A DNA stretch of 64,000 nt from NCBI GenBank assembly GCA_905178155.1, contig CAJINV010000007.1, positions 4,172,265-4,236,264 on the forward strand, written 5' to 3'. Shown piece after piece: positions 4,701 to 58,830 of the stretch. Each line of letters starts with the position of its first letter. Position 1 is the first letter of the stretch. Under the pieces are notes generated by a model. It was not told the origin of the DNA. It saw nothing but the letters and a program-made list of their open reading frames with translations, and searched no databases. Both the position numbers and the translations under genes were made by a program. Origin of the DNA: Amoebophrya sp. A120 (lineage: Eukaryota > Protista > Dinoflagellata).

Positions 4701-7700
4701 GACCGGCTCTGTTCGACGCAAATCTGCCCCCGACGGACCTCCTGTCACAAATCGCGAACAACGAGACTCTATCCACTGCGAAAAAACTTAAATTTGGGCT
4801 TTGGTCGTCTTCTGGAACAAGAAGTATGGAAGTGTCAGAATCGAAATTGACAAAGTCGAAAAATTTGTGATGCATAAAATCGATACCAGTTGGAGCCTCA
4901 GTTTCCAAGTGGCGCATACCAAATTTCGGGAGCGCCCAAATCCAGTCTGTCATGCTGTTTGGGCAAAGAAGACTGCTCCTGTCGTGCTACTCTGGCAGCA
5001 CCTTGCATACCTCTAAACAGGCTTGCAATTGGTCTCATTTGCCTGCTCCCCAATACAGGCCTTCAGTGCCCTACATTTTATGCATCACAGATTTTTCGAT
5101 TTTATCGATTTCGATCCTGACACATCCATAAGGAGGTTGCGGAACTTACTGTACTGGTGCAAGCTGAGTATTCTCGTTCTTCACTGCTACACTGCATGCA
5201 CTAGCAGCACTTAAATGCACTTTGATTTTCTTGTATGCACTCTTTTTTTCATAGATACACAACAAGTCGACATAAAGTTGGCCGAAAGTAAACTTGTCAA
5301 CATGCAGCCCTGAAGATTGTTCGTAGCGTCCCAACCAGTTACTTATTTCCAGAGGACCACCACGATAGAGCTCAGTATTTTTTTTTCCGTGCATAGACAA
5401 CTTCCTTGGCCGCCATCGCTTTGGTCGCGGAGTACCCTGGGTACGTGAAAGAAACCCTCGGCCCAAAGCCGCAACAGCCGGACGTGTTTGTCTCGGACAA
5501 CCATTCGCAGTCGGGGCTGAGCAAAGATGACAGGTACAGCGTGCGCCTGTTTGACTTCACGAAGAGCCAGTTTTTCACGATCACGCTTGACGACTTGATC
5601 CCCTGCAGCGGTGAGAAAAACTGGTACGACCGCCGGCCGGTCCCCGTTTTCTCCCAGCCCTGCGGCAACGAGCTTTTTGCGCTGTTGCTGGAAAAAGCGT
5701 TGGCCAAGTTGGCCGGAAGCTACGCGAATTTGTCCGGCGCGCCGTTAGTGTACTACCTGTCGGCCCTCACCGGAACGCAACCGACCACCCAAGAAGTGTG
5801 GGACTTGGTGCAGCCGAACCAGAATCTGAACGTATGCAGTGCAAAAGTATCGTAGTCGTATAAATACATTACAAATTTCCTCAGCATGAGAAATAGAATT
5901 TGTAATGCGGATTCACCCTAAGAAAAAAATTTGCAATGCATGATTGCAATACGAGTAGAGTACGAGTACGATACTTTTGCACAGGATAGAACGTGGTGAA
6001 AAACAAGATCATTCTTCCCGGTGGTGCACAACAAACTCCCCCGAACTGTTTTCCGCATGCCCTGTACACGAAGAAGGTCAGCAACGCAGAACTGAACTTC
6101 GACGACTTCTTCTCCACTGTGCTGCGCACGAATAAGAGCAAGCAAATCGTGTCCTGCGTGATTGCGCCGCGGGCGGGGGCGAGGAATCAACAAAAGAGGA
6201 GACCGGACGGGCTGGTGGAAGGCTTTCCGTACGCCTTGCTGGAGGTACTTCTTAATTGGAATTTCTACTAGCTCGTATCAATCTGTTGGTCATGGAAATC
6301 GATCCCGCACACACGTAACACGATCGCCCCAGATGACGCCTGTTCCTCAATGAAATGACAGTTCTGAATGACCTGAACTAGCCAGATCCTTAGGGAAATG
6401 GTCAGAATCTATCTAGATCCTAAAGGAAACTCTTCTCCATGTTCCGCGAATCCCCCAAATACTACGAAGGCAAAGCCGTCAGGATCGTAGTGAAATGAAT
6501 GGACTCAGCTCGGTCCAGGCGTTCAGAGTGGTCGCCCTGGGGGACTTGACTCCCGCCAGGGTCGAGCACCAATCTGAGCAGGTTGAGGGGTGGACTCCCA
6601 TGCTGTTTGGCCACTTGACTCTGTCCAGGTTTGGTCCTTTTGAATGTGATGAAGTTGGATGATTTGAACCTACAGGATGTAACGCAGCAAGAGACTTGCG
6701 TCACTTGCTTGCTTACTTGCAATTGAGAGAATTCATCGAATTGCTGTTGATAACGAGCTCAGTGGAGCAAGCGCGTGTAAGTGTGTGCGAGTGTTCTCAA
6801 GTCCATTAACACCACGCTACGCCTTGAGACTCAAACTGGCTCTTCTAGTCAGATAAGTTTATTTGAAATAATGGGCCAAGAGGCAAAGCTGGTGGAGAAG
6901 TTGTCCAGCGCGCAGGACTGGCGTGTCTGGCGTCGCGGGGTCACGAACGAGGTTTCTCGTCTCGGACTCCAGGAGTATTGGGATAATCGTCTTGCTGGTA
7001 ACCCACCGGGGATTCCGCAGGCGGCCAATACTGCCAATAACGCGATCCGGGAGAAGTGGCGCGACCTGAAGGATGCCATCTACAAGTCACGCACCGGGTC
7101 CGTGTCCACGTGGGTCAACAGTCAGCACTACATCAACGACGACGCTGCGCAACTGTTCATGCGTATTCGTGATGTTGGTCGCTTCAATGTTGCCTCCCGT
7201 GACCAGCAGCACATCAAGACCTCCTCGATCGACGCCATGCATTTCGACAACCGTGACGCGCCGAAGGATGCTCCGACGTTCCTGGCCCAGATCCTCGACT
7301 TTATGGTGATGGCGCCGAGTGTCTACGTCCCGGAGCCCGGGTGTCCGGTCGAAGATCATCATGTGAAGAACATTCTGGACAAGTTGCCCAAGATGTACGC
7401 GTCGGCCTTCCGCCAGACCATCGACCGCTGCGTGGACGAGTCCGATCACATCACCTTGCAGGAGATCGGGAACCGTCTCGAGAAGAAGCTCGCGCAGCTG
7501 GTCAAGGAAGGCTCGCACAAGATCGAGAGCCCGTCCTTCGGCAAGGCCTTCCCGGTCGTTGAGGAGAAGTCGAAGAAGACGAAGAAGGGAAATAAGCGTC
7601 AGAAAAATGACGATGATGATGAGGAGCCGGACTCCGCTGATGATGGTCAAAATGCTTCTGGCAAAGTGTTCTCGGCGAAAGCCTTGAAGCGCAAGATGGC

Positions 7701-10700: not shown

Positions 10701-13186
10701 CACAGGTCCTCCGACTGGGTCCGAGTTGGCTGGAGAACTTGCGGAGATCTTGCACCACGTCAAGGGGCGCATGATCGACGTCGAGCGTGTTCCGGAGTTT
10801 AACTCTGTGTCCAAGAAGTTTGACTTCCTAGGGTCAGTAGTGTACTACGCCTGGAATCTGCGAACCGTTAGGGTCGTGATGTCAGAGTACATATCCAAGA
10901 TTTGTAAGAAATTCAACGTCTCAGAAGCGGGCAAGCCGGTCCACTCGCCAAACTTCGATGAGTCTGAACTCGCTAAAGAAGTTGAAGGAGCTAAAGTTAT
11001 TGAAGGTTTTCCCCTTCGAGAGGTCGTTGGCTCTCTGCAGTGGGCTGCAACCACTTGCAGGGTAGACATTGTTGTCCCGGTTGCCACTGTCGCCAGATAC
11101 GTGGGCAAGCCGGCGACTCGGCCTGTCGTAAACGCCTGTAAGAAGATTCTGAAGTATCTATTGACAACGAAGGAGCAGGGTCTGTCGTATAGTCCGGAAA
11201 TTGAGGATGAATTCAACAGAATCTACAGCAAGCTACTGCCCGATGGGAGAGACTTGCCTGATGTGAATCTGTTTTCGGATGCTAGTTTTGCGAATTGTTG
11301 CAAGACCATGCGAAGCACTAGCGGTAGCATTATGTACTTCCGCGGCTTCCCGATCTGTTGGCGTAGCAACCGGCAGACCGTGAGAGCGTACTCCACGGCG
11401 GAGGCGGAGTATATAGCTGCTTCCGACACTATTGCGCTGAGCGAGCAGAATGACTTTACAGAATTCTTCAAACCTCTACCCACTGTCATGGTGGAGAAGC
11501 AGAATGGCTTATCTCCCTCCCTGGGTGATGCCATATTGTGGATCGACAACCAGTCCGCGATAACTACAGCTAAGAGCACAGACAACAAACCGAAATCGAG
11601 GCACTACGCACTGCGATATCTCCGCGTGAGAGACGCAGCGAGCCAGATCATGTTCTGCCCGACCTATCTGATGAAGGCAGACGGTCTTACGAAGCTCGAG
11701 TGTAGTGTGCCGCAGAGACGCTTACTCTTGCACCATATTGATAACCCCGACCCTAAGTCTTTTATTTGTGACTCCTCTGACGATGAGGATGATTTAGACA
11801 CTTTTATAGAGGGGAATCATAAGGGCAGGGCTAAAGTAGGCTATACTTATTCGATCTATTTTGGTTTCTAGAAGGTATTGGGGTAGCTAGTTTACCACAG
11901 CGCGCTCAGGAGGGGAGTGTGGTAGGACGTTATCCAGATTAGCATCACCGCCGCAGCGATTGAGGAGGGGCGTTGGTCATGGAAATCGATCCCGCACACA
12001 CGTAACACGATCGCCCCAAATGACGCCTGTTCCTCAATGAAATGACAGCTCTGAATGACCTGAACTAGCCAGATCCTTAGGGAAATGGTCAGAATCTATC
12101 TAGATCCTAAAGGAAACTCTTCACCATGTTCCGCGAATCCCCCAAATACTACGAAGGCAAAGCCGTCAGGATCGTAGTGAAATGAATGGACTCAGCTCGG
12201 TCCAGACGTTCAGAATGGTCGCCCTGGGGGACTTGACTCCCGCCAGGGTCGAGCACCAATCTGAGCAGGTTGAGGGGTGGACTCCCATGTTGTTTGGCCA
12301 CTTGACTCTGACCAGGTTTGGCCCATATGAATGTGATGAAGTTGGATGATTTGAACCTACAGGATGCAACGCAGCAAGAGACTTGCGTCACTTGCTTGCT
12401 TACTTGCAATTGAGAGAATTCATCGAATTGCTGTTGATAACGAGCTCAGTGGAGCAAGCGTGTGCAAGTGTGTGCGAGTGTTCTCAAGTCCACTAACACA
12501 GTCTAAATCTTCTAAAATCCAAACAGCCTGTCATGCTTTTATTACGCGGCTGCGTCCTATTCTGATGCCCCAGAACCGACAAAACAAACCGCCTCACCGG
12601 CGGGTGCAAAACAAGACCAATTTCAACTACTTTACCAAAAAACCATCTTATCAGGCTCGGATCATTCCCTGCAGTGGCGCACTCCAAGCGGGCATGAGCA
12701 AGAGAATGCTGAAGTTTCGCAACCCCTTCGGAAAAACCTCGTGCTACACCGGTGCCTTCAGCAGAAACGACATGGAAAACTGGAAGAAACTACAGCACTT
12801 CCACCTCTTTTTCAAGGGGGCCGGCGAAGTGAGCAGTTTCTGGATGGAGTACACGGACTTTCTGCTATCCAGTGCAAAAGTATCGTACTCGTATAAATGC
12901 AAATCATGCATCACAAAGCTTGTTCCCAAGGCAAATCAGCATTACAAATTTTATTTCTCATGCTAAGGAAATTTGTAATGCATTTATACGAGTACGATAC
13001 TTTTGCAATCCATATCTGTCCATATTCAGCAAAGTGTACGTCTGTCCGCTGAGCGAAACGGATTTTATTCAAACGGGTAGTGTAGCTGGTCCTTCAGGGA
13101 GTAAGCAGACGCACCTGCAGCAGGCGACAAGTTTTGGAAGTGACCAGTTTGAAATGGTTCTCAACTCCGTGGCGAGGGACGTTTAG
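1756..13186 (+). CDS. Calpain-like (CysPc domain) protein with long E/A-rich linker, probably catalytically inactive; multi-exon
   Basis: Calpain motifs LAAIALVAEYP, ITLDDLIP, ELFALLLEKALAKLAGSYANLSG…LTG, GLVEGFPY (GHAY position), KFRNPFG, FWMEYTDF. Approximate exons: 1756-1889, 2160-2433, 2708-2788, 3003-3149, 3302-~4423, ~4637-4824, ~5136-5150, ~5397-5832, 5994-6244, 12655-12865, 13020-13186. Junctions around 4420-5400 are unresolved. Confidence 0.8.
1890..2154. mobile_element. Introner/MITE-like intron, family A
   Basis: TIR tatggattgcaaaagtgtctgggtgtggaag / cttccagacccagacacttttgcatttgata. Flanks tccgc/ttcgc. Removing 265+5=270 nt gives in-frame CSANGFYLY. Confidence 0.9.
2434..2702. mobile_element. 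Introner, family A
   Basis: TIR tatcaaacgtaaaaatgtctgggtctggaag / cttccagacccagacacttttacatttgata. Perfect 5-nt direct repeat cgccc. Removal joins QSP|FADLNG. Confidence 0.92.
2789..2997. mobile_element. Introner, family B
   Basis: 29-nt TIR (3 mismatches) tatcccacgaaaaaactgcttcactgtga. Direct repeat tgcag. Removal joins GLQ|LFLIF. Confidence 0.92.
4825..5130. mobile_element. Introner, family C
   Basis: ~56-nt TIR tatggaagtgtcagaatcgaaattgacaaagtcgaaaaatttgtgatgcataaaat. Flanks agaag/aggag. Homologous to 39534 and 56892. The spliced frame here is not resolved. Confidence 0.88.
5833..5988. mobile_element. Introner, family D
   Basis: TIR tatgcagtgcaaaagtatcgtagtcgta / tacgagtacgatacttttgcacaggata. 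Direct repeat gaacg. Removal joins NLN|VVKNK. Confidence 0.92.
6284..6811 (+). repeat. 5' LTR
   Basis: Starts TG, ends CA; about 15 substitutions versus 11971-12498 by manual comparison (~97% identity). Confidence 0.95.
6871..8055 (+). CDS. gag: Copia Gag with CCHC zinc knuckle
   Basis: ORF from ATG 6871; CWICGKENHKADRC matches CX2CX4HX4C. Confidence 0.9.
   Translation: MGQEAKLVEKLSSAQDWRVWRRGVTNEVSRLGLQEYWDNRLAGNPPGIPQAANTANNAIREKWRDLKDAIYKSRTGSVSTWVNSQHYINDDAAQLFMRIRDVGRFNVASRDQQHIKTSSIDAMHFDNRDAPKDAPTFLAQILDFMVMAPSVYVPEPGCPVEDHHVKNILDKLPKMYASAFRQTIDRCVDESDHITLQEIGNRLEKKLAQLVKEGSHKIESPSFGKAFPVVEEKSKKTKKGNKRQKNDDDDEEPDSADDGQNASGKVFSAKALKRKMAKVRKQTEASALAAHGLPPKANAKGGSGQKGGGKTGRNQSTPCNTVTKPKCWICGKENHKADRCRWNPNNQGKGQWGGAWGNQQPQWCPPVSQSQTNNQNQGQGAGGKQGGWVWQGPA
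8056..11871 (+). CDS. pol: Copia Pol (protease, integrase, RT, RNase H), in frame with gag after one TGA
   Basis: LVDSCA (protease); HRRFGH…CPEC and MDF/RRDNE/NGTCER (integrase HHCC, DDE); DLDSAFL, LKKALYGLK, YGDD (RT); FSDASFA, STAEAEY, IDNQSAI, ADGLTK (RNase H). Confidence 0.95.
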   Translation, partial: PDEGGVFISEYGSCVLNFENLEDFGVDSSSCFTAQTKDAVSLVDSCANKYLSRHESDFIDISSNVCRINGTAGARDGFVGKLKENALGLPYGVYFKHLPRDIDRVLPWLGEDNPSDRGWDLNYNSSGGSLVNRESGQMLPIKNHERLTLPVLGCDLFGMGLRGQATRDTAEDIACITIEESIASCHLTRLEQHRRFGHFHVDGLSVQCPECDKAKGARSSHAKERDTSNYKPEPLKLLAMDFAVGIKPVSIRSRTCVLVVICDAIKKCFWFPLKLKSDCVEVLEEVIKGIRQKYALTLEDKVVWFVRRDNEPVLGSDSMTKVMQSLRVGDAPTVPYNPEQNGTCERFTRTIFGAVRAMLVNVDKRLWCYSVEYAAACWDRLPHKYSKVPEYDGKTPAEILDERTGRNSSKVGTRMLGRFGCLVYFREQVKKGEAHEAPEGGVEVVAPKLSAPFRRGVFLGLCPKSSGWRVGTYVTDGRPAAGRRWMEYSTIDVKFREECLVKNIEDLAPNSKGIYVECDAIEALPSGAPCAPSLPCVGPEIGAVRRLGVDVSEHTGRQPDGPETLVIESVDWEDDPGQIHPEPEGVKPEEGNLDDHPTHSSLSSPRKVSPSPARIVAGNRNSKPRGRGRPKGRKDTRKRVRRTRKELDALKKDASAFAAAIAAQDDREEGEEFLDVQRYLTTSAKLDPARCKDSVEWNAATNKEDCRLEAYKVWEPATDEELATAKQVLPIAILLTEKRDGTKKARAVALGNLDRSGELDTFAPVVSHAANRLLLAAAAADGDDVIPFDLDSAFLSALLDRDVFCRLPPIWAKKHGVEIVKLKKALYGLKDAPRLWHKKYEEVLTKLGWEPCPSAPGLWKKPSLEHPGKFLKLAGYGDDNLITGPPTGSELAGELAEILHHVKGRMIDVERVPEFNSVSKKFDFLGSVVYYAWNLRTVRVVMSEYISKICKKFNVSEAGKPVHSPNFDESELAKEVEGAKVIEGFPLREVVGSLQWAATTCRVDIVVPVATVARYVGKPATRPVVNACKKILKYLLTTKEQGLSYSPEIEDEFNRIYSKLLPDGRDLPDVNLFSDASFANCCKTMRSTSGSIMYFRGFPICWRSNRQTVRAYSTAEAEYIAASDTIALSEQNDFTEFFKPLPTVMVEKQNGLSPSLGDAILWIDNQSAITTAKSTDNKPKSRHYALRYLRVRDAASQIMFCPTYLMKADGLTKLECSVPQRRLLLHHIDNPDPKSFICDSSDDEDDLDTFIEGNHKGRAKVGYTYSIYFGF
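11971..12498 (+). repeat. 3' LTR
   Basis: Direct repeat of 6284-6811 (first base C instead of T), preceded by the PPT. Confidence 0.95.
12866..13014. mobile_element. Introner, family D, inverted relative to 5833 copy
   Basis: TIR tatccagtgcaaaagtatcgtactcgtataaatgc. Flanks tctgc/tctgt. Removal gives DFL[S/P]IFSKVYVC. Confidence 0.92.
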
Positions 13187-44856: not shown

Positions 44857-46158
<1,302 letters not shown>

Positions 46159-47087
46159 AATGTAGATGTACCTTTTTTCATGTTCGAAAATGGTACGATG
46201 AACCACATGAATTTGTGATCAAGCATTATGCCATATTGAGTTATATCAGAACTCCTCCGGCGTTCACGCTGCAAAGCAGCAAGTTGCCTTCTTGTGAACT
46301 CATTGTGGACGAGATTCATAACTGTCGTTCATGTCGTGCTCGTGACGTGCAGGCGCAACATGTAAGGGAAATGAAACATGGCCGACGTTATTTATGATTA
46401 CACTGTACCTCTATTGATGTACTCCACTTATTTCAACAGCGATTCTATTGCCATTACAATTTAGGAGAAAGCCGCTCTTTGATGCGGATGCAGATAAGAT
46501 CCAAATTCACAACTATACCGCCGTCTCTAATTATCGGGACCAAAGCGATTGCCAGCTTTTGCCTCTCATCCTTCGAACGCGCTCAAAAATCTGGCAAGGA
46601 AGTAGATAGAGTTCGAATAACAAAAAAAAGATGAGCAGTAGGTACTTGTTGTTTCACCCCGCTTATATTGATTGCCCACATCAAGTTTTGTTGATACCAT
46701 CGTGGTAGTAGTACTAGCGCGATGTTGTCCCCCACACTTCTTTTGGTGAAAAACACGCCCACCCCACCTCAGAAACGCATTTTCCTCGTTGGATCCAGTA
46801 AATCTTACTCTAATACGCAAGTCGGTTCTTCGTCTCGTGGCCGGAGGACGAAAAAGATACGCAGAGGAAAAGCGCAACCACAAAAAGCCTGATATAGCCT
46901 CCTCAAATAATCTCACACGAAAAATAGTGTTCGGAGATAAAAATAAACATGTACTCACAACTTTGCTCAGCCACTGCCACATAGTAGTCTGACATTTTCA
47001 TCGGTCGAACTTCACTCTGTCATGGATTGTGATCATTTTCCGCAGGCTGTGCTGCAAAACTAAAACATCGCTATAATCGTGAAGATA

Positions 47088-47158
47088 TATAGATGATGTT
47101 CGATGCACGAGAATACGATCCATGGGTAAGGAACATCTCGTAGGTTCTCACTTTTCAG
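47088..47158 (+). repeat. Split direct repeat A1
   Basis: 68/71 identical to 47895-47965. Confidence 0.93.
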
Positions 47159-47598
47159 TTCCTACATCGATGTGAGCGAGGACCGTTCGGCCTCCACCCT
47201 CCCCAGAGCTCGAGTGGATTCGTCCACGCTCTGTTTTGCACTTCAATAAAAATAAAATTTTGAACTTTCGCGGTTCAACGTATTTTTGTTGCTGCAAAAT
47301 GTCTCAAGACTACCCACCTCCTGCCCCTGGCACCTCCGGTTGTTTTGTTCTGTTGGCCCACCAGCCGACCCTCCGATCCACACGCGCATATAAATTAAAT
47401 CTCGAATTTTCGCGGATTTTGTAATCCGTTATAAATAAAATTTTGAGTTTTCGCGGTTTTTTGTGGACTTTCGCAGTATGCTCCGTTCTCTCCCTACTCT
47501 GTCTACGCTATCGTTGTCTGCATGGGAAAAATGATCCAACGAGCGAATGCATGCTGCTTCTTAGTCTCTTCAATGGGAGGGAGACATAGTACGGTCGA

Positions 47599-47965
47599 GC
47601 GTGGCATTGCTATATCCTAGTTGCTTTGCGAAAACAGTTCGGAAAGGCTCGCTGAGCCTTGTTTCACCTTTTCACAAAGATCCTTGTTGCTGCGCACGTT
47701 GCCGTGCTTGATCACGGTCAGGCTGCGTACCCCGCTTCCTGAAAGCATCGAATGTACCAGCAAGCTGACACTTTCTCCATGTACACATGAGGTTCCTCGA
47801 ATATAGAAAAAAGATGTCGATGCAAAGGTATCGAAGATCAGCTTTGGATCGTTTTGGGTCGTGTTCGAGTAAAAAGAATTTAAGTATAAAACTTTATAGA
47901 TGATGCTCGACGCACGAGAATACGATCCATGGGTAAGGAACATCTCGTAGGTTCTCATTTTTCAG
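47599..47965 (+). repeat. Internal B1-A2 junction
   Basis: The 300-nt B copy overlaps the 71-nt A copy at tata (47895-47898). Confidence 0.93.
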
Positions 47966-48061
47966 CCCACCCGTTCCCATCCCTTTTTGATCTTTCTCAC
48001 TCGCAGAGCATCGTTCGTGGATTAATTTTTGTGTGTACTTTTCGGAGTTCTTTAGTAAAAA

Positions 48062-49219
48062 ATGAGCACTTTGTTAGGAAGTTCCTTCGGATCTCTTGAT
48101 ACAGCGACCAGTGGTGACGACAGCCCTTTGCACATCCCTAATATATGCGATTTGCATTGGAAATTATTTAACGTCGACCACAAAATTACGGATCTATTTG
48201 TGCCCGAAGTGCAATCGCCTAGTCTATATTGTCCCACCGCCGCCCCAGACAGCCTCCTGCAAATCGAGGCGAGGGACACGCAAACGGACTGGGCCTTTCG
48301 GCAAGAAGTTGGAGTTAACGAGGTGCAGGGTTCCGATCTCCTGCATCAGTATCGTCACGTACGTACGTTGGGACTTGCAGCGAAGCGCCTCATCCCGCCC
48401 ACGTACTCGTTGGTGACCGCGGATATCTCGCCGACGAACGTGGTTTCTCCAGCTTTGCCTGGGCGACAAACCGGCTATACAGTCGACTCCAGAACAACTA
48501 CTAATAGTTTTTGCAAGTTCTTGTTCTGGTTCAACCCGATCGGGCACCCCTGCTACGCGGGGTATATCGAGATCCTGTGTCGCGACTTCACCGATCTGCA
48601 GTTGGAAGAGTTTCTCAACTGCACCGAGTGTTTGGACAAGATTATTGCAGGCGTCGTGAAAAATTACGTGTCGAACGAGTTATATCTGCGTACAAACGAC
48701 ACCAACCTGCAGACTGACTTTGACATCGATTTGGTGAACACCGTCTTCGACGGTGTCGGCTCGGAGTTTCACTTTCAGGACGTCAAAGCCTGCCTCGAAA
48801 CTTTTAACAGTAACGAGTTTTTCACGCCGGAAAATATTAATTTTAACGAGGACCTGGATCGTGTTCAGGCCGCACTGTTTCTGCAGCGGCATCTGGTCGT
48901 CGTTCCGTCCAACACGCAAGAGACACGCCACGTCGGCGACATCGAGTTGTGCGCCTGCTGCGTCATCGACCCATCTGCTAGTGCGAACCTGGGTGCTAGC
49001 CTAGTCCGCGCGCTGGATAACAAGGTTTTCTTCGGTGCCTTTGGTTCGCTTGAAGAGAATCGAAACGAAGCAGAAGTCGAAAACCCGGACGACCTAGAGG
49101 AGATCTGGCCGGTCTTCTTTCGTAAGCTGGGTCCGTCTACGCCCGACCCGCGGCAGTCCTTCACGACTTCATCTGATGTTTCCGGCAGAGCTTCTGCGAC
49201 AATCAGAGGCGGCTTCTGA
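48062..49219 (+). CDS. ORFX of the YR retroelement, unknown function (385 aa)
   Basis: Intronless ATG ORF just inside A2; overlaps the start of the YR ORF by 44 nt; no motif recognised. Confidence 0.7.
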   Translation: MSTLLGSSFGSLDTATSGDDSPLHIPNICDLHWKLFNVDHKITDLFVPEVQSPSLYCPTAAPDSLLQIEARDTQTDWAFRQEVGVNEVQGSDLLHQYRHVRTLGLAAKRLIPPTYSLVTADISPTNVVSPALPGRQTGYTVDSRTTTNSFCKFLFWFNPIGHPCYAGYIEILCRDFTDLQLEEFLNCTECLDKIIAGVVKNYVSNELYLRTNDTNLQTDFDIDLVNTVFDGVGSEFHFQDVKACLETFNSNEFFTPENINFNEDLDRVQAALFLQRHLVVVPSNTQETRHVGDIELCACCVIDPSASANLGASLVRALDNKVFFGAFGSLEENRNEAEVENPDDLEEIWPVFFRKLGPSTPDPRQSFTTSSDVSGRASATIRGGF

Positions 49220-51134
49220 AGCCGCACAACCAGTCCTTCAGCAATCGCGTCCACTCGCAAAGTGGCGTGCGGAGAAACTGGAAAAAGAACAAGCTGCTTT
49301 TGAAAAATCGGAAGCAGATAAATTTATGCGTGAGCGAGAACTGCGGCGTGCTCGCGCACCCGCATACATGCCGATGAACATTGATTTTTCGAAAATTCGT
49401 CATCCCGCGGACGCTGGGGACAGCTTTGGAGTTCTTCCCGACGATGTTGGCCTTCTTTCCGACGAGGAGGACCTTCTGAGTTTTGATAATAAGCCGCCTC
49501 GGCCTTCTGGGTTACTAGGGAGCTCGTCTTCGGCTCGCGCAAGATCCCCTCGTCGCATCTCGACTACAATCAATAATTACAACAACGTCAACGTGATTTC
49601 GAGTTCTTTCAATTCTTCTACGACCACCGCCCAGAGCTTCGCATTTTTCCAGCCGCCGCAGCAGTCGTCGATGGAAAATCGTCGTGTGCAGTTCGAAGCC
49701 CCTGCTACGGAAATCGAAGAAGAATCTATTTTGCTACATGGTGGCTCGGTCGCTGACCCGCCTGTTGTGTCCGGTCAGCACCTCATGAATTTTCATGCTG
49801 CTCGGCGTGCTGCTGCCGTGTCCGGGCAAGCCGACATGCAGATCGATAACAAGAAAAGAATTCCGGACGAAGAAAATCTGACCGAGGAGCAAGCTCTTAA
49901 TGCTATGCTTCAAATCGTCGAATCCGACGATCCTATGGCTGGGCCCGACCCGAAGCACAAACCTGCTGGCGCCTCCATCAACAGCACCCCGCAGGAGATC
50001 ACGGAGCAGATTAACATCGTGAACGAGAGTTTTCGCTGGAATAAGAATTCTTCCGTGAAGTACCGGGTGCAGTACGCCAGATATGCCAAACTCATGATCA
50101 CTTGTGGTCTGCGTCCCTGGCCTGAAGATTGCACGCACTATTCAATGATGCTGCTCGGTCAGTTTATGCTGAAAATCGGGAAGGGAAAGCAATCCCGTTG
50201 TACGAACATCAGCCACATCAAGTCGTTTATCGCAGCCGCGTCCCCGCTGTCGCACAACGCAAAAGAAGCCTACTCGGCGACTTTCAAGATGTTCTTGCGC
50301 CTCAAGGCCCCCGCCATGAAGAAGACGGGTTTTCGACTCAGTCATATGGTAGTCCTGCTGCTTAACATCGAAAATTTGCGGGTGCGCGTCGGTGCTTTGG
50401 CTACATCCAGGGGCGCGCCGATCCTGAAGTTTTATCAGTTCATCCTCGCCATTTGGTGGGGACACTTGAGATTCGACGATGCGGGATCAACCCGTCGTCT
50501 CTGCAACGGCGACGAGTTTGTGGAATACACAATTTTTAGTGCCAAGAACGATCAGTCCGGAGGTCATCGTGATGGCTGGCTTCTGGGCTGCGGGTGCAGT
50601 ACGGCGCCGCTCGTTGGACAAGGTTATGTTCGCTTCTGCCCGGTCCACTGCATCGATACGATGGACTGGCAGACCATGCGTTTCTGGGACATCCAACGTA
50701 TTCGTGGTGCTTTTCTCGAGATGGTGGAGCGCGGTGGACTCCGTGATGAAGTCGACCAAATGGAGCGTAACGACGACATCGGTACGCACTCTGTGCGTAT
50801 CGGTTCAGTGCAAAGTGCCTACGAAGGTGGTGTTCAGCAGCATGAGCTGCAGCTGATGGCCCGCCACAAGGACGCTAGCACCACCAAAGGTTACATCAAC
50901 ACCGCCCTCCTCTTCCCAGATACGATTACGATCGGGTGGCCACGCCTGCGGGGGACACATTTTGGTCCGAATCCGCATGCTGTGCGATTGGCGACAAATC
51001 ATCAGTTCATGGCTCAGCAGAAGTGTTTCAGACGCGGCGTGCTCCCGCGTGACAGGGTGAATCACGCGGCGTTGTCCGACAGCTTCTTCGAGTATAGAAA
51101 CCCAGCTGATGTTAACGATGATGCTGTGCCCTAA
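49176..51134 (+). CDS. Tyrosine recombinase
   Basis: Catalytic set R (GHLRFDD), K (SAKNDQ), HxxR (THSVRIG), H (ARHK), Y (TKGY), plus the DIRS-type CPV motif. Confidence 0.92.
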   Translation: MFPAELLRQSEAASEAAQPVLQQSRPLAKWRAEKLEKEQAAFEKSEADKFMRERELRRARAPAYMPMNIDFSKIRHPADAGDSFGVLPDDVGLLSDEEDLLSFDNKPPRPSGLLGSSSSARARSPRRISTTINNYNNVNVISSSFNSSTTTAQSFAFFQPPQQSSMENRRVQFEAPATEIEEESILLHGGSVADPPVVSGQHLMNFHAARRAAAVSGQADMQIDNKKRIPDEENLTEEQALNAMLQIVESDDPMAGPDPKHKPAGASINSTPQEITEQINIVNESFRWNKNSSVKYRVQYARYAKLMITCGLRPWPEDCTHYSMMLLGQFMLKIGKGKQSRCTNISHIKSFIAAASPLSHNAKEAYSATFKMFLRLKAPAMKKTGFRLSHMVVLLLNIENLRVRVGALATSRGAPILKFYQFILAIWWGHLRFDDAGSTRRLCNGDEFVEYTIFSAKNDQSGGHRDGWLLGCGCSTAPLVGQGYVRFCPVHCIDTMDWQTMRFWDIQRIRGAFLEMVERGGLRDEVDQMERNDDIGTHSVRIGSVQSAYEGGVQQHELQLMARHKDASTTKGYINTALLFPDTITIGWPRLRGTHFGPNPHAVRLATNHQFMAQQKCFRRGVLPRDRVNHAALSDSFFEYRNPADVNDDAVP

Positions 51135-51522
51135 ATTTTGCACGACATCGTTCCGGATCTCGAACGTCAGTTATGTACGATCGTAAGACGGCTAACTGGT
51201 TCGAAGTCTTTTTATATCAGATCTTTTTGCAAATTTGAAGAAAACGAAAATCATATAAATCCTCGCCTCCGATCAGCCCCTCGCAAATTCCATCTTAATT
51301 TGCTCCTCGCTGTTTAGGCTCTGTTCTCTCGATCTTTGATCTGCTTTTCACAATAACAAATTTACTTTTGCTTGCGTTTTTCGCTCGAAGTTAATTCGTT
51401 TTTCGTCTTCTTCATTTTTCGCTCACAGGGATTCGCGAACTGAAGATCTGTTTTAAGACTTCGACCAGTTACTTGTTTTTGTCTTGCGACTTACTACTTC
51501 TTTTTCAACCCAAAAAGACAAA

Positions 51523-52341
51523 ATGGCAGCTGCTGTTCCGGGTGTGGCCGATGCCGCTGCTCTCATGCAGGCGAACATGATGGCTCAGGCCGAGATCGGT
51601 CTGGGTGTTTTGACCCAGCAGCAGGCCGATGACCTGCGTGTCGCGCAGCAGAACTGCTCCGATACTATCGACGGGCGCCAGTACTTGTACCTCTTGCAGA
51701 TCGGTGGAAATCAGCGCTTGGATGCGTTGCACTCCGAGTCTACGCCGCCGACCTGCCGCCTGACGCCGGGTCAGACCCTTACGGGCTGTCGTGCCATCGA
51801 GTATTTAAACGACGATCAATATCGTTCGCTGAAGGACATGTTGTACGACGCCTGCCGCGACCAGATGCCGACTTTCGCCGATATCATGTCCGGAAATATG
51901 GAGAAGCTCGTTAAAGCCCTTCCAATTGAGAAGGTCTCCTCCATTTTCTCCAAATGTTTCAAGGAGACCCTTAAGCGCGACTTGCTGCCGAACGTCGCCG
52001 CGGGTAACGACGAGTATCAGCGCCGCTGCACGCTCGCGTTGACGAACAACTTCCGCATCGCCTTTACCTCCGCAATTGCGCTCGAGAAGCGTCTGGCTGA
52101 GGTAACTCAAGATGTTGCTGCTACTTCGTATACACCGACTAGAATTAAGGCGGACGGCACTCCCCTCAAGGAGGTGAAGAAAGTTGATCGTATTTGTATT
52201 GCGCACATTCGTGGCAAATGCACAAAGGGTGCTAAGTGCAAGGACTTACACAAAGCCCCTAAGGCACGGTTGATGAAGGTGTTGAAGAACTTCAGCATCA
52301 CCTTGGCTGACGACGAGCTTAAAAAGTTCGTCAAAGAGTAA
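51523..52341 (+). CDS. Gag-like protein with C-terminal CCCH zinc finger
   Basis: CIAHIRGKCTKGAKCKDLH matches C-x7-C-x5-C-x3-H; lies immediately upstream of RT. Confidence 0.7.
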   Translation: MAAAVPGVADAAALMQANMMAQAEIGLGVLTQQQADDLRVAQQNCSDTIDGRQYLYLLQIGGNQRLDALHSESTPPTCRLTPGQTLTGCRAIEYLNDDQYRSLKDMLYDACRDQMPTFADIMSGNMEKLVKALPIEKVSSIFSKCFKETLKRDLLPNVAAGNDEYQRRCTLALTNNFRIAFTSAIALEKRLAEVTQDVAATSYTPTRIKADGTPLKEVKKVDRICIAHIRGKCTKGAKCKDLHKAPKARLMKVLKNFSITLADDELKKFVKE

Positions 52342-52665
52342 TTTTTATGCCGTCCGCCTTTAACACTTGTATGCCCACCCGACATAGTCGTATGTAGTTT
52401 CCGTTCGATGACGCTACGCTTATGTTTCGGTTCGTACAAAATGCTTCGTTCACATGTAACTTTTGGCGTACTGATTTCGTTGGACTTTGGAAATTTAAAT
52501 AACAGATTCCGCACCTGCGATTTTAATCCGCGCTCCGCGTCTCCCCACGTCCAGGTCTCAACCCCCCTTGCTGTGGCCTACCTGTGGATGGAATAATAAG
52601 ATCTTGTGCTCATTACTATATACTTGTTCAATTCTCTCTTACTTCTTTTTCTTTCTTACATCATC

Positions 52666-55062
52666 ATGGAACGTGTTTATATCGAGGTTATGGACACCAA
52701 TAAGTCTCGTGCTTACGGTGTGCCGCGAAGTTATCCAGACTGGGTGTTGAACTCAATCGAGTTTAATAAAGGACGATCTGATGAGGCTGTTTGTGAGAAA
52801 AATCAGGAATGGGCTAAAAAGCTTCTTCAGTACGCCCAAGACCGCAGTTTAGATGCGGAGGAAAAAGCCTTCCATGAGCAAATTCCACAGCCGCGTCGTG
52901 GCATCTATTTTGGTAAGCGCTTCGTGCTTCTTCGTCGTCTTCTTTCGGAAGCTGTAGATCAGCTCCCGCAGCTACACCCTCATCGTGAGAAAATTCTAAG
53001 TATTGTTACGAAGCTTCAGGCAGGCTTCGTTACCGACGGAAAGATCGACCCCTCCGGTTTCTGGTCGGCCCTCTCCGAAGACAAAATTTTCAAGCAGCTT
53101 ATTGAGGCGCAGGCAAATCCGATTGAAGACTTCCAAGAGCCCCCGACTTCGCACTGGGCTGCCGAAGAGGACATTGAGTCCCTTTACGAGGACTGCGAGA
53201 AAATGATTTCTCGTGGCCTCTGGCGCGTGCAGGATCACGCTGACTTGAAGCGGCGCGGAATTAAATATAGGGCGGCAATAGCTTTTCCCGTCAAGCGCGT
53301 CGGTAAACGCAATCGCACCTGCATCGACAAGAGGCGTTCGAATTTCCACCTGCAGTCGATGGAGAAGATTCGGCTCCTTGGCTGTCGCACAGCAATCCAG
53401 ATCAAGGAAAGATGCCTCTCCCGCTCGTCGACGCATGTGGGCACCTTTCAGTACAAGCAGGACATCCAGGCGGACGTCCTGACCGAGTTCGCGATTCGCC
53501 GCTCTTTCGAGCAGCATGGCAGTATTTCACGCGAAAATTTGCGTATGAAAGATGATCGTATTCGCTCGCCGCTTTACTCTTTTGTTCCCGGTGATTTCGT
53601 TCGTGATTTTGAAGGTTTTTACTATCAAACTACTGTAAATAACGAATACATGAACTCGATCTGGATTCCCGTTCCTTTTTCGCGTGTGAAGCCTAAGGAC
53701 CGAAAGAGAGACTCCGCTGGGAACTTCGTTAGGACGTTCCTTCTTGTTTCTTCTCTTGTGTCCGTATTTGGCTCTTTGACTAGTATTCACGATTGTTGTA
53801 CTGTCTCCGAAGCGCTCATGCTCGTTTTTAATCAATTGTTTAAACTAATTTATACCATTTATATTGATGACGGTCATGGCCATTCCAGGCTGGGTGCTCA
53901 GCGGTCAGACGAAGCTCTATGCGATCTCGCGTTGCACATTCTGGGGTGGCAGCAGTCACCAGGCAAGCAACAGTCTTCGCTGCTTGGTGCCGTTGTCGCG
54001 TCGTTTAATGATGCTTCTGCTTTCTCGCCGGTTTCGTCGTCGTCTGTGCGTGATGTGGTTCAGAAGGCTATTGTCGTGCTCGGAATCGCGTATCAAGTCA
54101 ACTTCTTCCGGCAGAAAATCTTCGTTTCCGTTGCGGCCGAGAAGCGGGCGCAATTTCGTGCTGATGGTCACGATATCTTGGCGCGTTTAACATCGCGTCG
54201 GGATCGGGAGTTGTACCTACAACATTCGGCGCTCCTCTCGTTCATTGGGCTGTTTCGCCATTGTATTCAGTTCAACAGGCAGTTGACTTTTTACGCCAAG
54301 GGTCTGGACATCTGGCAGCAGGAGTCGTTCTTCAAGAAGAACATCACTCGTACGGCGTCCAGGAACGAGCTCAAGCATCGCATCGTTACGGCCCTCTTTG
54401 TGGAGCAAAATCTTCGCGACAAGGAGATTTCTCGTGCGTCTGTGGATAAGGAAATTATCCACATGTACACTGACGCCAGCATGCGGAATGCGCCGGCGTG
54501 TGCGAAAGCAGTGCGTGCGGGCCGAGGCAAGCCGGAACTTTTTCGGCCGTCGCTGTCGCCGTTTGAAATCCGCTGTGCTGTGGTGTTGTATGATGGGCAA
54601 GAGTCTGTCCTTGCCTTTCGTTCTAAACTTGATCAAGTTCCACCTAAAATCGCGGAAATGCCCTCCACGGTGAATATAGGTGTTTTCGAAGCCTTGTCAC
54701 CGCGGGTGGGTATTGATGTGTTTCAAAAACGTTTGTCCGGTAAATTACTCATTTTGCATCTTGACCACATAGGAGATGTTTTCTCCTTGGGCAAGAATTC
54801 GTCTAGAAATTTTATTATTCAACACATTTCTCATGCTTTTCATCAGTTTTGCGTTAAATACGACATTCAGGTTTATTTCACCTGGTTGTGCTCCGCTCTG
54901 AATTTTGCAGATGTCGGTACGCGTGCCGATCGTCATCATCTTTTGCATTCTACTTTTCCAAATATTCAAGAACGAGTTATTCCATCCGCTCTTCTGCAGG
55001 CCCCCCAGCTATGGGGACTGGACATCGAAGAGGAGCCTAGCCTTCTGTTTACTCCTTTTTAA
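52666..55062 (+). CDS. Reverse transcriptase / RNase H (DIRS-like)
   Basis: FPVKR.GK..R..ID.R..N, DFEGFYYQ, VFGSLTS, YIDD (RT); YTDAS, NIGVFE, LHLD, NFADVGTR (RNase H). No DDE integrase or protease. Confidence 0.92.
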   Translation: MERVYIEVMDTNKSRAYGVPRSYPDWVLNSIEFNKGRSDEAVCEKNQEWAKKLLQYAQDRSLDAEEKAFHEQIPQPRRGIYFGKRFVLLRRLLSEAVDQLPQLHPHREKILSIVTKLQAGFVTDGKIDPSGFWSALSEDKIFKQLIEAQANPIEDFQEPPTSHWAAEEDIESLYEDCEKMISRGLWRVQDHADLKRRGIKYRAAIAFPVKRVGKRNRTCIDKRRSNFHLQSMEKIRLLGCRTAIQIKERCLSRSSTHVGTFQYKQDIQADVLTEFAIRRSFEQHGSISRENLRMKDDRIRSPLYSFVPGDFVRDFEGFYYQTTVNNEYMNSIWIPVPFSRVKPKDRKRDSAGNFVRTFLLVSSLVSVFGSLTSIHDCCTVSEALMLVFNQLFKLIYTIYIDDGHGHSRLGAQRSDEALCDLALHILGWQQSPGKQQSSLLGAVVASFNDASAFSPVSSSSVRDVVQKAIVVLGIAYQVNFFRQKIFVSVAAEKRAQFRADGHDILARLTSRRDRELYLQHSALLSFIGLFRHCIQFNRQLTFYAKGLDIWQQESFFKKNITRTASRNELKHRIVTALFVEQNLRDKEISRASVDKEIIHMYTDASMRNAPACAKAVRAGRGKPELFRPSLSPFEIRCAVVLYDGQESVLAFRSKLDQVPPKIAEMPSTVNIGVFEALSPRVGIDVFQKRLSGKLLILHLDHIGDVFSLGKNSSRNFIIQHISHAFHQFCVKYDIQVYFTWLCSALNFADVGTRADRHHLLHSTFPNIQERVIPSALLQAPQLWGLDIEEEPSLLFTPF

Positions 55063-55124
55063 AAATCTAGTGAGCTGAAGGTCTAACGTCAGCATTTTGT
55101 ACAATACTTTGCGCTATAGTCATC

Positions 55125-55424
55125 GCGTGGCATTGCTATATCCTAGTTGCTTTGCGAAAACAGTTCGGAAAGGCTCGCTGAGCCTTGTTTCACCTTTTCA
55201 CAAAGATCCTTGTTGCTGCGCACGTTGCCGTGCTTGATCACGGTCAGGCTGCGTACCCCGCTTCCTGAAAGCATCGAATGTACCAGCAAGCTGACACTTT
55301 CTCCATGTACACATGAGGTTCCTCGAATATAGAAAAAAGATGTCGATGCAAAGGTATCGAAGATCAGCTTTGGATCGTTTTGGGTCGTGTTCGAGTAAAA
55401 AGAATTTAAGTATAAAACTTTATA
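55125..55424 (+). repeat. Split direct repeat B2
   Basis: 300 nt, no differences seen versus 47599-47898. Confidence 0.95.
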
Positions 55425-56098
55425 ACGAAACTCGGTTTTGGATCCAAATCGTGGAGTAGATAGAGCAAGGTGCCAGGGCTGAAACAAGTCTCAAAAGGGA
55501 CCATGGGGCTGGGAGTCATGGAATCTATCGTCAGATACCGTGGGGAGGAACTGCTTACACCAAATAATTGTTGACATATGTTCAATTGCTACTCTTAGGT
55601 CGTAATTCCTTTGGCCTTTTGCTTGTAGCACTAGAACGACCAGAAGTTCAGTTTCTGCTCTTGTGCCGGCTTACGGGTTTCAGCAAAGAATTCTACATAT
55701 TATGCTCGATCACCTGTTTTTAGAAAACTTTTTCGAAGCATCGAATTTCCGCAATATATTGGTCTTGCTTTATTTTCAATTCTTGGAAATACACTTGATT
55801 GACCTGCTAGTCTTATTACCGTAGACACCACTAGCTGTGCCACAGCATAATTTTTTTCTTGAAAGTAGAAGGCGTAACAGGAAAAGTGGGTCCAGAATTC
55901 AAATTCTTTATGGCCACTGCGTGCGTCGGCCCTTGAGCTCACGCCGTTCTTCAGGTGAACTCTGACATCGATCACGAACAAGAGCACCAACGCATTTTGA
56001 TATTGTGCTGCACCAGCAGCAGCACGAAGGTCACCTGACAAACGGGAGACACACCACCACCACCACCAGTTTCTGCGAGCCAACCGCCTTCTCTGAAA

Positions 56099-58830
56099 AT
56101 GAACGCTGACCAGCACCGTCATTATGACGGTAACAACCAGCGGCCACTGCCGGATGCGCCCAGAATACACAAATCACCCGAGATGATGCCGGGCGTGTCC
56201 CTGGGGCAAAGGTATAATTGGGGCCACCAGTGCACGCCGAGTGGGAGGTCACTTTTTCCGCAGCCGCCCGTGTCGCAGTTTCACAGAAGTATACACAACT
56301 AAAAAAATCATTTACTCACATGTTTTGTTATCCGCCGCTGAGACGCGCCAAAGTTGAATGTGATTCTTCCTTGATGCCTTTCTGCATGACAACCGCAACC
56401 AAGAATAGAAGATGGTTTTAGTCGTATCTTCAAATTTCTTGAGGTATCAACCAAGATGCCGAGATGGGGAATCTTTGGGTCGACGGCTCCAACACCTATG
56501 AGGACGCCCGACTTTCGACCCAGCCCTACCACCTGGAAAAGTATCAAATGCAAAAATGTCTGGGTCTGGAAGAGTGCAGACTTGTCATGCATATTTTCCC
56601 TGCCCCATGAGGTCTGGAATGCAGGACCTGGCATGACAGATTCTGCGAAGTCTCTATCATGCCTATCCTGCATGAGAGACTCCCACAACTCATGTTGGTC
56701 AAAAAAGGACAATTTTAATTTTTAGCGATCACGCAACACAGATTTTTGTGTGACCCACAGGACGCTGCATCACAAGTTCCATTCTCCCAGACCCAGACAT
56801 TTTTACAATCCATAAAAAGGACGTCCGAACGATGACAGCTTACAGCTACGACCGTAAGGTACCTCCAGGGACCTACGTCGAGCCAAAAGTGTATGGATGT
56901 GTCAGGATCGAAATCGACAAAGTCAAAAAATTTGTGATGCATAAAATGTAGAGCACTGAGGGCCTATAGTAATAGTACTAGGGAGCAGGCAAATGACGCC
57001 GATTGTGGGCCTGTTTAGGGGTATACAACGTGCTGCCAGAGTAGCACGACATGAGAAGTCTTCTTTGCCCAAACAGCATGACAGACTGGATGCGGGAGGT
57101 GCCCCCGAAATTTGTCATGCGCCACTTGGAGACTGAGGCTCCAACTGGCAATGGCATCGATTTTGTGCATCACAAGTTTTTCGATTTTGTCAAATTCGAA
57201 GATTCTGACACCTCCATAAAGTGTTTAACCAAGGCAACCACGTAAACTGGAAGACCCGGCCGCTGGACAAGTTTGAGCAGGCAAAAATGAGGCGAGACAT
57301 CCGCTGTTACTCCGTGCCGAAAAGGGGCGTGCAGGGGGAGCACCACCCTGTGTGTATTTAATATTTTTGTGTTCGAGGACTTCTTGTTCATCTTCATGCT
57401 GGAGTACTTACGCAGTACATCTGTGATGCGACACCACCCTGCTGTGTACTACGAGTGAAGATGATCATCTCGTCCACCTTGCATGTTGAGTTGTAGATAT
57501 GAGGAATTTTTTACCGTGCGATTTTCTCCAGTCAATCTCCCAACAGGTTGCTTCGTGGGGTTTGTAGAATGGACCATGGAACGCGGGGCGATGCCAAGAG
57601 GAGAGCAGGACCGGCTCATGTACGCGGCTTGCGCAAGTAAATACCCCTGCAGTAGTATCTTTTGTAAAAACATCCCCACCCCATAGTCAAGTTGGGAAAT
57701 CTGCAAGACAAATCGACAAGCTTTGGCTGCTGCGCATGACAAGTTGGGCCCCGTAGTGTAATCCTATTTAGCTATTTCAGCAGCATCACAGATCTAGCAT
57801 ATCATGATGATTCGAGCATGACAAATTCCGAAATACGACTAGAAATTGCTTCTCATGGGGCTCCGCATGAGAGACATTTTCACCATGCTGATTTGCATGA
57901 CAGCTCTGGGGTCGTTTACAAAGGGGAGGCAAAGTGTGCCGCACTTCTGTTTAGCATGACAACTCTGGGGTGGGGATGTTTTTCCACAGGATAAGTAGGC
58001 CAGCAACCTACGAGGAGTACATATCGCATGGCATAGCAGGCCTGCCCTTGATCAACCAAACGAAATACGACATTACGTTCGTCGGGCCAGGTACCGTACT
58101 CGCAATGATATTGATTCGTACAACTTCTAGTTGCTCTTGCATGTTTACTTCTAGTTGCTCTTGCTATTGTCGCATCATGGATTTTTGAGATTGAGTTGTC
58201 ATCGATCACTACGCAGCCAGGTCTCCTGCTCGAAGCATTTACAATCTATCGTTGATGAAGATGATGACCAAAAAAACGCTGCATCGTCTTCAATATCAAG
58301 GTAGCGACAAAATCGGCCCGGGCGTGCTTGACCATAAGAACACAAATTTTGCACGAAAGAAGGTAGTCTTTCCCGGTGACAGAATGGACGGGAGCAGTGG
58401 CCAGATTGAAATAGACGACTCGTCCTGCTGGGGCAGGAAAGCATGTACTGAAATGTCAAAGTGCCTTCGTTTTTTGAACGATTTGCATTTCTGACTTATA
58501 CTCAACATGGGATAAGTTTTTTTATGGGTATGTTCTGTTACTTTGGCTAGTATGGCTAAACTCAGTACAACAATTCTGACCAAAATACGCCGACTGCAAG
58601 ATCGTCTATCATGAGCCTAAAGATCTTGATCAACCAAACCTTCAGGCATTGCCGTCGTTTACCAGAACCGGTTACGGAAACAGCCCTCGTTGAAGCAGTT
58701 TGGGCTCTTGAGGAACACGCTCAACAAGCCGCTAAACGAGTTGCAGGCGAATAATCTGAACAAAGACTCGACGCAGTGGGACACTTTTCAGCACCTGTAC
58801 AAGCAAAACGCACGGGTCACGCCTTTGTGA
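56099..58830 (+). CDS. Hypothetical multi-exon protein
   Basis: The + frame stays open across introners at 56542, 56892 and 57656 (…YHLEK|DVRTM…EPKV|FNQGN…; …YPCS|RPATY). Last exon is GIAVVYQNR…VTPL*. Confidence 0.65.
56542..56814. mobile_element. Introner, family A, inverted relative to the 1890/2434/62422 copies
   Basis: Family A TIR; direct repeat aaaag; its right arm is the reverse complement of the left arm of the 1890 copy. Confidence 0.92.
56892..57218. mobile_element. Introner, family C, inverted relative to 4825/39534
   Basis: Direct repeat aagtg; interior is the reverse complement of the 4825 copy. Confidence 0.92.
57656..57993. mobile_element. Introner, family F, inverted relative to 28488
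   Basis: TIR …aaaaacatccccacccca; direct repeat agtag; frame restored with +5 nt. Confidence 0.92.

Follow-up and report, generated by a model that had tools for sequence, protein, structure and literature searches.

The window analyzed here, a 64,000-nucleotide (nt) stretch of the Amoebophrya sp. A120 genome (contig CAJINV010000007.1, positions 4,172,265 to 4,236,264 of the forward strand), carries at 47088-55424 what is probably an intact tyrosine recombinase (YR) retrotransposon. A repeat search of 45000-58000 gave the layout A1-x-B1A2-[four + strand ORFs]-B2, where A and B are repeats and ORFs are open reading frames. A preliminary description had proposed the arrangement A1...B1A2-[four + ORFs]-B2 with the genes in the order ORFX-YR-gag-RT/RH, the last being a reverse transcriptase/RNase H. 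The repeat and ORF search reproduced that arrangement and added the 440-nt segment x between A1 and B1, and the gene order is backed by the catalytic residues and Cre match of the YR, by a CCCH finger in the gag-like protein, and by the motifs and fold of the RT. The features, in window coordinates, are as follows.

47088..47158, + strand: A1, left terminal repeat, 71 nt, starting with TATA and 96% identical to A2
47159..47598, + strand: x, noncoding leader of 440 nt from A1 to B1, with no + strand ORF of at least 80 amino acids (aa)
47599..47898, + strand: B1, internal copy of the B repeat, 300 nt, 100% identical to B2, its 3' end forming the palindrome TATAAA-ac-TTTATA
47895..47898, + strand: TATA overlap of the B1 end and A2 start, an internal copy of the circle junction and candidate recombination core
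47895..47965, + strand: A2, internal A copy, 71 nt, directly 5' of the coding region and followed by CCCACCC
48062..49219, + strand: ORFX, 385 aa, open, with homologues in the long-YR subgroup only
49176..51134, + strand: YR, 652 aa, overlapping ORFX by 44 nt in a different frame
51484..52341 (first ATG 51523), + strand: gag-like CCCH ORF with a C-x7-C-x5-C-x3-H finger near the C terminus
52606..55062 (first ATG 52666), + strand: RT/RNase H, 798 aa from the first ATG
55125..55424, + strand: B2, right terminal repeat, 300 nt, with TATA at the element boundary

The ends of the element and its internal junction share a single short sequence. TATA also opens A1 (47088-47091) and closes B2 (55421-55424); on the left the flank ends in ...gaagata and the element begins TATAGATG, on the right the closing TATA is followed by acgaaact, and outside TATA the flanking and element bases differ at both ends. 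Because the one TATA stands at both ends and at B1/A2, joining B2 to A1 regenerates the internal B1/A2 junction exactly. YR retrotransposons are marked by terminal repeats and by an internal copy of the sequence formed when the ends join, and both are present here. A 300-nt repeat pair at 100% identity is far above chance expectation. B1 and B2 differ at 0 of 300 positions, and A1 and A2 at 3 of 71 (positions 12, 17, and 63). The identical 300-nt B copies and the open ORFs noted in the preliminary description were both found again.

To compare coding sequences, we used elements found by protein search of the same assembly, referred to as C10a, C16a, C5a, C5b, C6a, C3a, C15a, C35a, and C3b; their loci were tiled by their own contig coordinates. 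The ORF at 49176-51134 has the signature of a tyrosine recombinase, replacing a DDE integrase or endonuclease. Its catalytic domain lies in the C-terminal half, the N-terminal half being of low complexity, and residues R432, K457, (H/Y)-x-x-R, (H/W), and Y573 are conserved in an alignment of nine paralogues. The YR profile matches Cre recombinase over box II (H-x-x-R...W...Y; E ~9e-4), Pfam returns a weak, sub-threshold Phage_integrase match, and the ratio of nonsynonymous to synonymous substitution rates (dN/dS) is 0.09-0.15 between related copies.

The ORF at 52606-55062 is identified by its motifs and modeled fold as an RT/RNase H of the long terminal repeat (LTR) retroelement type. It has no Pfam match. 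Its domains follow in the order all-helical N-terminal region (~190 aa), RT (YIDD), connection, and RNase H (DAS...E...DN...N-x-x-AD). Seven paralogues from the same genome carry the RT motifs FPV-x-Q...R-x-C-x-D-x-R-x-x-N, D-x-x-x-(F/Y)-Y-Y-(Q/N), F-G-S, and Y-I-D-D, and the same seven carry the RNase H motifs DA(S), E, (H)-x-D-N, and N-x-x-D. An AlphaFold2 model built from a 77-sequence alignment reached a predicted local distance difference test score (pLDDT) of 91.7 and a predicted template modeling score (pTM) of 0.91, and its top Foldseek matches were the RTs of Moloney murine leukemia virus (MMLV), cauliflower mosaic virus (CaMV), Ty3, and human immunodeficiency virus (HIV), with E values of 1e-9 to 1e-6. 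RT/RH is the most conserved ORF of the element (dN/dS 0.09-0.11 between related copies).

Between YR and RT lies an ORF whose product appears to be a gag-like, nucleic acid-binding CCCH protein. It has Pfam Torus/zf_CCCH_4 matches, its CCCH cysteines are invariant in an alignment of seven elements that includes one from a metagenome, and its dN/dS is 0.07 (C35a versus C3b). ORFX, upstream of YR, has homologues at ~27% identity in the same position in C10a, C16a, C5a, and C5b, with no Pfam match and no usable Atlas match; an AlphaFold2 model from five sequences was poor (pLDDT 43). Since it is under purifying selection (dN/dS 0.07, C10a versus C5b), ORFX is taken to be a real gene, and it would be a conserved accessory protein of unassigned role. 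Across all four ORF types dN/dS is 0.07-0.15, which indicates purifying selection. The ORF spacers are 325-390 nt long and pyrimidine rich, and Pfam found no rve integrase, protease, endonuclease, or methyltransferase domain among the element ORFs.

The gene order and the position of the junction both recur in the genome. The order (ORFX)-YR-gag-RT/RH is found in at least eight other elements (C10a, C16a, C5a, C5b, in which RT is deleted, C6a/C90a, C3a, C15a, C35a, and C3b), whose proteins are 16-40% identical to those of the window copy. Self-comparison of the loci revealed A1...B1A2-[ORFs]-B2 in four of these elements, with A and B sequences unrelated to those of the window:

C5a: A of 99 nt, x of 456 nt, B of 348 nt; A copies 98% and B copies 96.8% identical
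C3a: A of 95 nt, x of about 0, B of 681 nt; A copies 100% and B copies 99.6% identical
C15a: A of 111 nt, x of 172 nt, B of 476 nt; both pairs 100% identical
C3b: A of at least 82 nt (cut at the locus edge), x of about 500 nt, B of 123 nt; both pairs 100% identical

C35a has a B1/B2 pair with B1 upstream of all ORFs. Searches with 3' flanks, which returned coordinates only, placed B1 upstream of ORFX in C10a (387 nt, 100%) and C16a (375 nt, 97%). In C5b, B1 is likewise upstream of ORFX and matches the query, the B repeat of C10a, at 96%, and in the C6a group no upstream copy of the 3' flank was found. The proteins of C3a and C15a are ~93% identical, the two elements occupy different loci, and both carry A1; A1 therefore belongs to the transposing unit. 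Together, these comparisons support the view that the 5' B/A junction and the YR-gag-RT order are genuine lineage traits.

Two of these groups have features of their own. The C6 group (C6:2867038-2878084, with identical sequence on the short contigs C90 and C91; L028-L030 and L054-L056) forms a third subgroup, in which the YR has 623 aa, the RT has 815 aa, and the middle ORF is large; the ends of C90 are identical over 95 nt, which suggests a tandem or circular assembly. C5b (C5:1224963-1230353, L050) is an RT-less deletion derivative of the C10a family with the structure B1-ORFX-YR-partial gag-B2. Both of its B copies match the B repeat of C10a at 96% identity, and its ORFX and YR are open, with dN/dS of ~0.1 relative to C10a.

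Sequences around the junctions follow patterns that cross family lines. A palindrome at or across the junction recurs in three families, each with its own sequence: TATAAA-ac-TTTATA in the window, TATATT-tgg-AATATA in C5a, and TGATA-atgga-TATCA in C15a and C3a. As the shared junction core, the window element has TATA and C5a has TATAG. Such palindromes fit what would be expected of a recombinase site. The heptamer CCCACCC also stands 3' of A2 in three unrelated families (window 47966-47972; tiles C5a 2290-2296 and C3b 808-822, where it reads CCCGCCCGCCCACCC) and has no counterpart 3' of A1, while A terminates in a run of T plus CAG, CTG, or TGT. Its place at the repeat boundary may mark a priming or processing signal.

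The leader x of the window element contains three copies of a short motif (...AATAAAATTTTGAACTTTCGCGG..., 30-40 nt) at 47234-47275, 47376-47417, and 47417-47458. The motif is also present in x of the unrelated element C5a (L014:1497-1705), and it occurs in small clusters at ~18 other loci (L003-L021) where no coding sequence for YR or RT lies within 1.5 kb. A regulatory repeat of the host is one possible explanation, and a small dispersed element is another.

Relatives of the RT extend well beyond this genome. A HMMER profile search with RT/RH against 1.84 billion cluster representatives returned 2230 proteins at E <=1e-3 and 113 at E <=1e-30. The proteins returned are at most ~36% identical to the genome's own RTs, with two exceptions (one at 100% and one at ~50%), and a few of the distant ones reach Pfam RVT_1 below threshold. 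In a FastTree phylogeny of 77 sequences from a trimmed alignment, the genome's RTs fall in one half, interleaved with ~20 metagenomic representatives; the tree was built without named references and gives no placement among DIRS, PAT, Ngaro, and VIPER. Clusters of RT look-alikes in the Atlas are labeled Perkinsozoa and Euglenozoa, which is a lead only. Other searches returned less: a homologous-protein search gave 0 matches for the window RT and the 77-sequence alignment and only itself for P0061, and the seven-paralogue RT alignment matched nothing in metagenome and viral contigs, where the single-protein query P0020 did find a match.

P0020, one of the metagenomic representatives interleaved with the genome's RTs in the tree, lies on JGI contig Ga0099797_100011 (L062, 43% G+C), which belongs to another organism. 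There, B1 at 5437-5705 is identical to B2 at 12674-12942 (269 nt, 100%), and between the two copies lie a YR (hhalign probability 97%, E 3e-11 against the YR alignment), a CCCH ORF, and an RT. From this layout it follows that a YR-first order with B flanking all ORFs reaches at least one other organism. The lineage is diverse in this genome, present in metagenomes, and apparently undescribed. Two further observations were made on these sequences: P0030, a 1126-aa metagenomic RT/RH relative, has an accessory domain of the AlkB-like, 2-oxoglutarate (2OG)-Fe(II) oxygenase kind within its YR-type RT protein (residues 677-816; Pfam E 5.6e-16), and a 2238-aa ORF with no Pfam match (L062:12869-19582) starts inside B2 and extends into the flank.

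We consider it likely that the window holds an intact, autonomous YR retrotransposon that belongs to the order DIRS, broadly defined, and to a highly divergent lineage, with the structure A1-x-B1A2-[ORFX, YR, CCCH gag-like, RT/RH]-B2 and replicating via a circle junction. In such a scheme, a genomic RNA running from within A1 to within B2 would carry one complete B/A junction (B1A2) in its 5' leader and would be copied into cDNA by RT/RH. B1A2 could then serve as a bridging template that restores the missing A1 and B2 tips and joins the ends, giving a closed circle with two B/A junctions. The YR would recombine one of these junctions, at the TATA core beside the short palindrome, with a target TATA, leaving TATA at both ends. 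This route, from the RNA through the circle to the integrated copy, is inferred.

The preliminary description had held that such a layout needs a modified replication scheme, and this expectation was not borne out. The circular form, (B/A)-x-(B/A)-ORFs, is the same circle that would arise from the Ngaro/VIPER arrangement A1-[ORFs]-B1A2-x-B2, so the window layout amounts to the Ngaro/VIPER plan circularly permuted and differs only in which junction is opened on integration, that is, in the arc that bears the ORFs. Since the circle is the same, the split-direct-repeat model applies unchanged and no new replication chemistry is required. Movable junctions (PMC4157794) and shuffled YR/Pol order (PMC6681497, PMC5890265) are also known, and the elements that have them represent intermediate states. 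The split-direct-repeat model predicts near-identical repeat pairs at insertion (PMC6681497), and recent activity is plausible in view of the identity of B1 and B2, the open ORFs, and the dN/dS of ~0.1 in related copies.

Several observations weigh against this reading. The element family is single copy in the DNA of the 115.5-Mb assembly (115,520,608 bases), so the boundaries rest on one copy per family. The flanks proved unique in the assembly when an empty site or a second haplotype was sought, and neither an empty site nor a circle junction was observed. All three repeat mismatches fall in A, with a probability of ~0.007 under uniform decay, (71/371)^3, and they count against the model because equal re-templating of both pairs would not predict them. 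This distribution hints that the A and B pairs are not renewed in the same way and that B is homogenized more thoroughly than A. A search of L062 for A1 detected none. The translation of four separated ORFs from one RNA is also unexplained by the model. Three RNA sequencing (RNA-seq) runs with the same species label gave 0 reads on 46950-52949, which is no test of expression. One run guessed to be RNA yielded a single 151-nt contig within B.

One alternative is an LTR-like element, in which the transcript would run from B1 to B2, strand transfers would homogenize B, and A1-x would be an integration by-product or relic. The fact that B flanks all ORFs in every examined element, its 100% identity over 269-476 nt in four of them, the imperfect A pair of the window, and the L062 element with its B1/B2 and undetected A1 are what such a cycle would leave. 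However, in five elements from four unrelated families the A1 and A2 of the same element are 96-100% identical, and A1 has been inherited through transposition in C3a and C15a, where an RNA starting in B1 could not have transmitted A1-x. The B1/B2 direct pair is also the only resemblance to LTRs: besides lacking rve integrase and protease domains in Pfam, the element showed no tRNA primer-binding site by a 5' LTR, the sequence after B1/A2 does not start with TGG, and the region contains no tRNA gene or Rfam feature. We therefore regard an LTR-like cycle as unlikely. Less likely still is a chance tandem or rearrangement, with a mini-element (A-x-B) beside a full element (A-ORFs-B), or an artifact from assembly of a tandem array. 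A1-x-B1 plus A2-ORFs-B2 is formally a head-to-tail pair, and TATE elements have been reported in tandem clusters (PMC6681497), but the same arrangement recurs in four families, five elements in all, whose A and B sequences are unrelated. No second copy of the window A, x-flanks, or B that could represent a resident mini-element exists in 115 Mb, and upstream of B1 a collapsed array would have ORF sequence where A1 and x now stand. Two DNA runs contain 99% of the words of the stretch; these come from one sample and study, possibly the assembly's own source. The preliminary description had itself raised the mini-plus-full tandem and asked for an alignment of other genomic copies; with the order in at least eight diverged elements and mirrored repeats in four, that tandem, an assembly collapse, and a one-off rearrangement were all rejected on recurrence in diverged families and on the single-copy A and B.

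A DNA-only, Crypton-like cycle, in which the YR excises and integrates a DNA circle while RT is a passenger or otherwise used, would make sense of directly repeated B/A-type sites, which would permit YR-mediated circle excision. Yet RT/RH is the most conserved ORF, with dN/dS of ~0.1, and is linked to YR and the repeats in every full element, and the redundancy of split repeats suits retro-copying, not cut-and-paste; we give such a cycle very little chance. A more serious rival concerns classification. The element might be a member of a named group, VIPER/TATE-like or a Symbiodinium-type DIRS, with permuted repeats, and not a distinct lineage, which is possible though not what we favor. VIPER and TATE have YR before RT/RH, long YRs, separate ORFs, and no methyltransferase (PMC6681497). 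In Symbiodinium DIRS, Pfam fails to recognize the highly divergent RTs, and the integrase ORF may come before or after the Pol ORF (PMC5890265). The Atlas labels given above are a further hint in this direction. In contrast, VIPER, TATE, and SymbioDIRS are described, in a comparison made by description only, with a 5' A1 and a 3' B1A2B2 (PMC6681497, PMC12278014, PMC5890265), and none is described with a CCCH ORF between YR and RT. The earlier suggestion of a possibly undescribed lineage thus holds in part: the element is very divergent, having no Pfam RT match, and no description was found in the searchable literature, and it may fall outside VIPER/TATE or Symbiodinium DIRS.

Beyond the retrotransposon reading itself, we tentatively entertain a broader view. 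The window element may represent an unnamed, superfamily-level YR lineage of marine alveolates and other protists, with YR first, a CCCH gag, a 5' junction, and >2000 RT/RH cluster-level relatives. In this lineage B would be LTR-like, acting as promoter and terminator and being homogenized in each cycle, and a polycistronic RNA would be processed by spliced-leader trans-splicing. Stronger homogenization of B, drawn also from the perfect B identity in C10a, C15a, and L062, is the sole observation that favors an LTR-like B. Spliced-leader trans-splicing of the separated ORFs is speculation; it would account for pyrimidine-rich tracts that end in AG, seen where A ends and 5' of the gag-like ORF.

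Of all retroelement classes, YR retrotransposons are the least well understood, and repeat geometry is the basis of their replication model. A family with the junction 5' of every gene implies that one circular design leaves both junction position and gene order free to vary, and it offers a natural test of the circle-junction model. A large RT/RH clade that is invisible to Pfam in marine protist data also means that standard transposon annotation misses such elements. Elements such as these, intact and low in copy number, with defined ends and a core of 4 bp, lend themselves to rapid amplification of cDNA ends (RACE), circle PCR, and recombinase assays.

The surroundings of these elements contain other repeats. 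In the window, a 1257-aa + strand ORF at 8098-11871 matches Copia-type RVT_2 (E 5e-25) and marks an LTR/Copia element or derivative. Within 1-46000, 11 of the 12 ORFs of at least 300 aa upstream of the element are on the + strand, and the AT skew changes sign near 46000, a pattern consistent with gene arrays that run in one direction and with a shift in regime close to the element. Over the whole window, nearly all long ORFs share one strand. Downstream of the C10a B2, C10:2219999-2220500 (L031:1-500) contains two repeat families of ~190 and ~270 nt with dozens of genome-wide copies at 75-86% identity; they may be of miniature inverted-repeat transposable element (MITE) or introner type.

The genome paper for Amoebophrya A120 describes a 115.5-Mb assembly, introners, and a truncated dinoflagellate spliced leader, and it leaves repeats mostly unclassified, with DIRS and tyrosine recombinases unmentioned (PMC7789003). 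In the searchable literature, we found no description of a junction 5' of all ORFs combined with YR-CCCH gag-RT/RH, nor of YR elements in Amoebophrya sp. A120. Among the known systems, Ngaro elements (DrNgaro1 and the Cafeteria Ngaros, PMC8547959) resemble the window element in several ways: a YR takes the place of an integrase, the RT/RH is of LTR type, a methyltransferase is lacking, the ORFs are separate, the split direct repeats include a single internal B/A junction, and copy numbers are low, with a number of unrelated types in one genome. They differ in their A1-[gag, RT/RH, YR]-B1A2B2 structure, whereas B1A2 lies 5' of the ORFs in the window, C5a, C3a, C15a, and C3b and the order is (ORFX)-YR-gag-RT/RH. 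Their gag finger is CCHC and not CCCH, and the window RT is unrecognized by Pfam RVT_1.

The VIPER and TATE elements of kinetoplastids (PMC6681497, PMC12278014) share a YR located 5' of RT/RH, a long YR (TATE), the lack of a methyltransferase, and a very divergent RT; their repeats are 100% identical in intact copies, and a target-site duplication is not expected. They have the order gag-like-YR-RT/RH with YR and RT overlapping, and a 5' A1 with 3' B1A2B2 (PMC6681497 Tables 1-2), whereas the window element has its B1A2 at the 5' end, a CCCH ORF between YR and RT, and an alveolate host. ORFX could match the VIPER gag-like ORF, which is defined by position, but the CCCH ORF intervenes and the short-YR subgroup has no ORFX. 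SymbioDIRS-Dnmt3 and other Symbiodinium DIRS (PMC5890265) also come from the dinoflagellate lineage, have RTs that align poorly to Pfam, and show shuffled YR/Pol order (two structures), but their repeats follow the typical A-coding-B-A-B pattern and their Pol includes a Dnmt3 domain, in contrast to the mirrored repeats and the lack of such a domain here. DIRS1-like elements are set apart by inverted terminal repeats, an internal complementary region, and a methyltransferase domain; the search of 45000-58000 found no inverted repeats at the element ends, and Pfam found no such domain. A precedent for the position of the junction is in nematode Pat1 and Volvox Kangaroo (PMC4157794), where the internal B1A2 is not 3' terminal but lies between the methyltransferase and YR regions. 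Those elements differ in carrying a methyltransferase domain and gag-RT/RH-methyltransferase upstream of the junction, with the YR of Kangaroo inverted; part of their coding region lies downstream of the junction, and in the window element all of the ORFs do.

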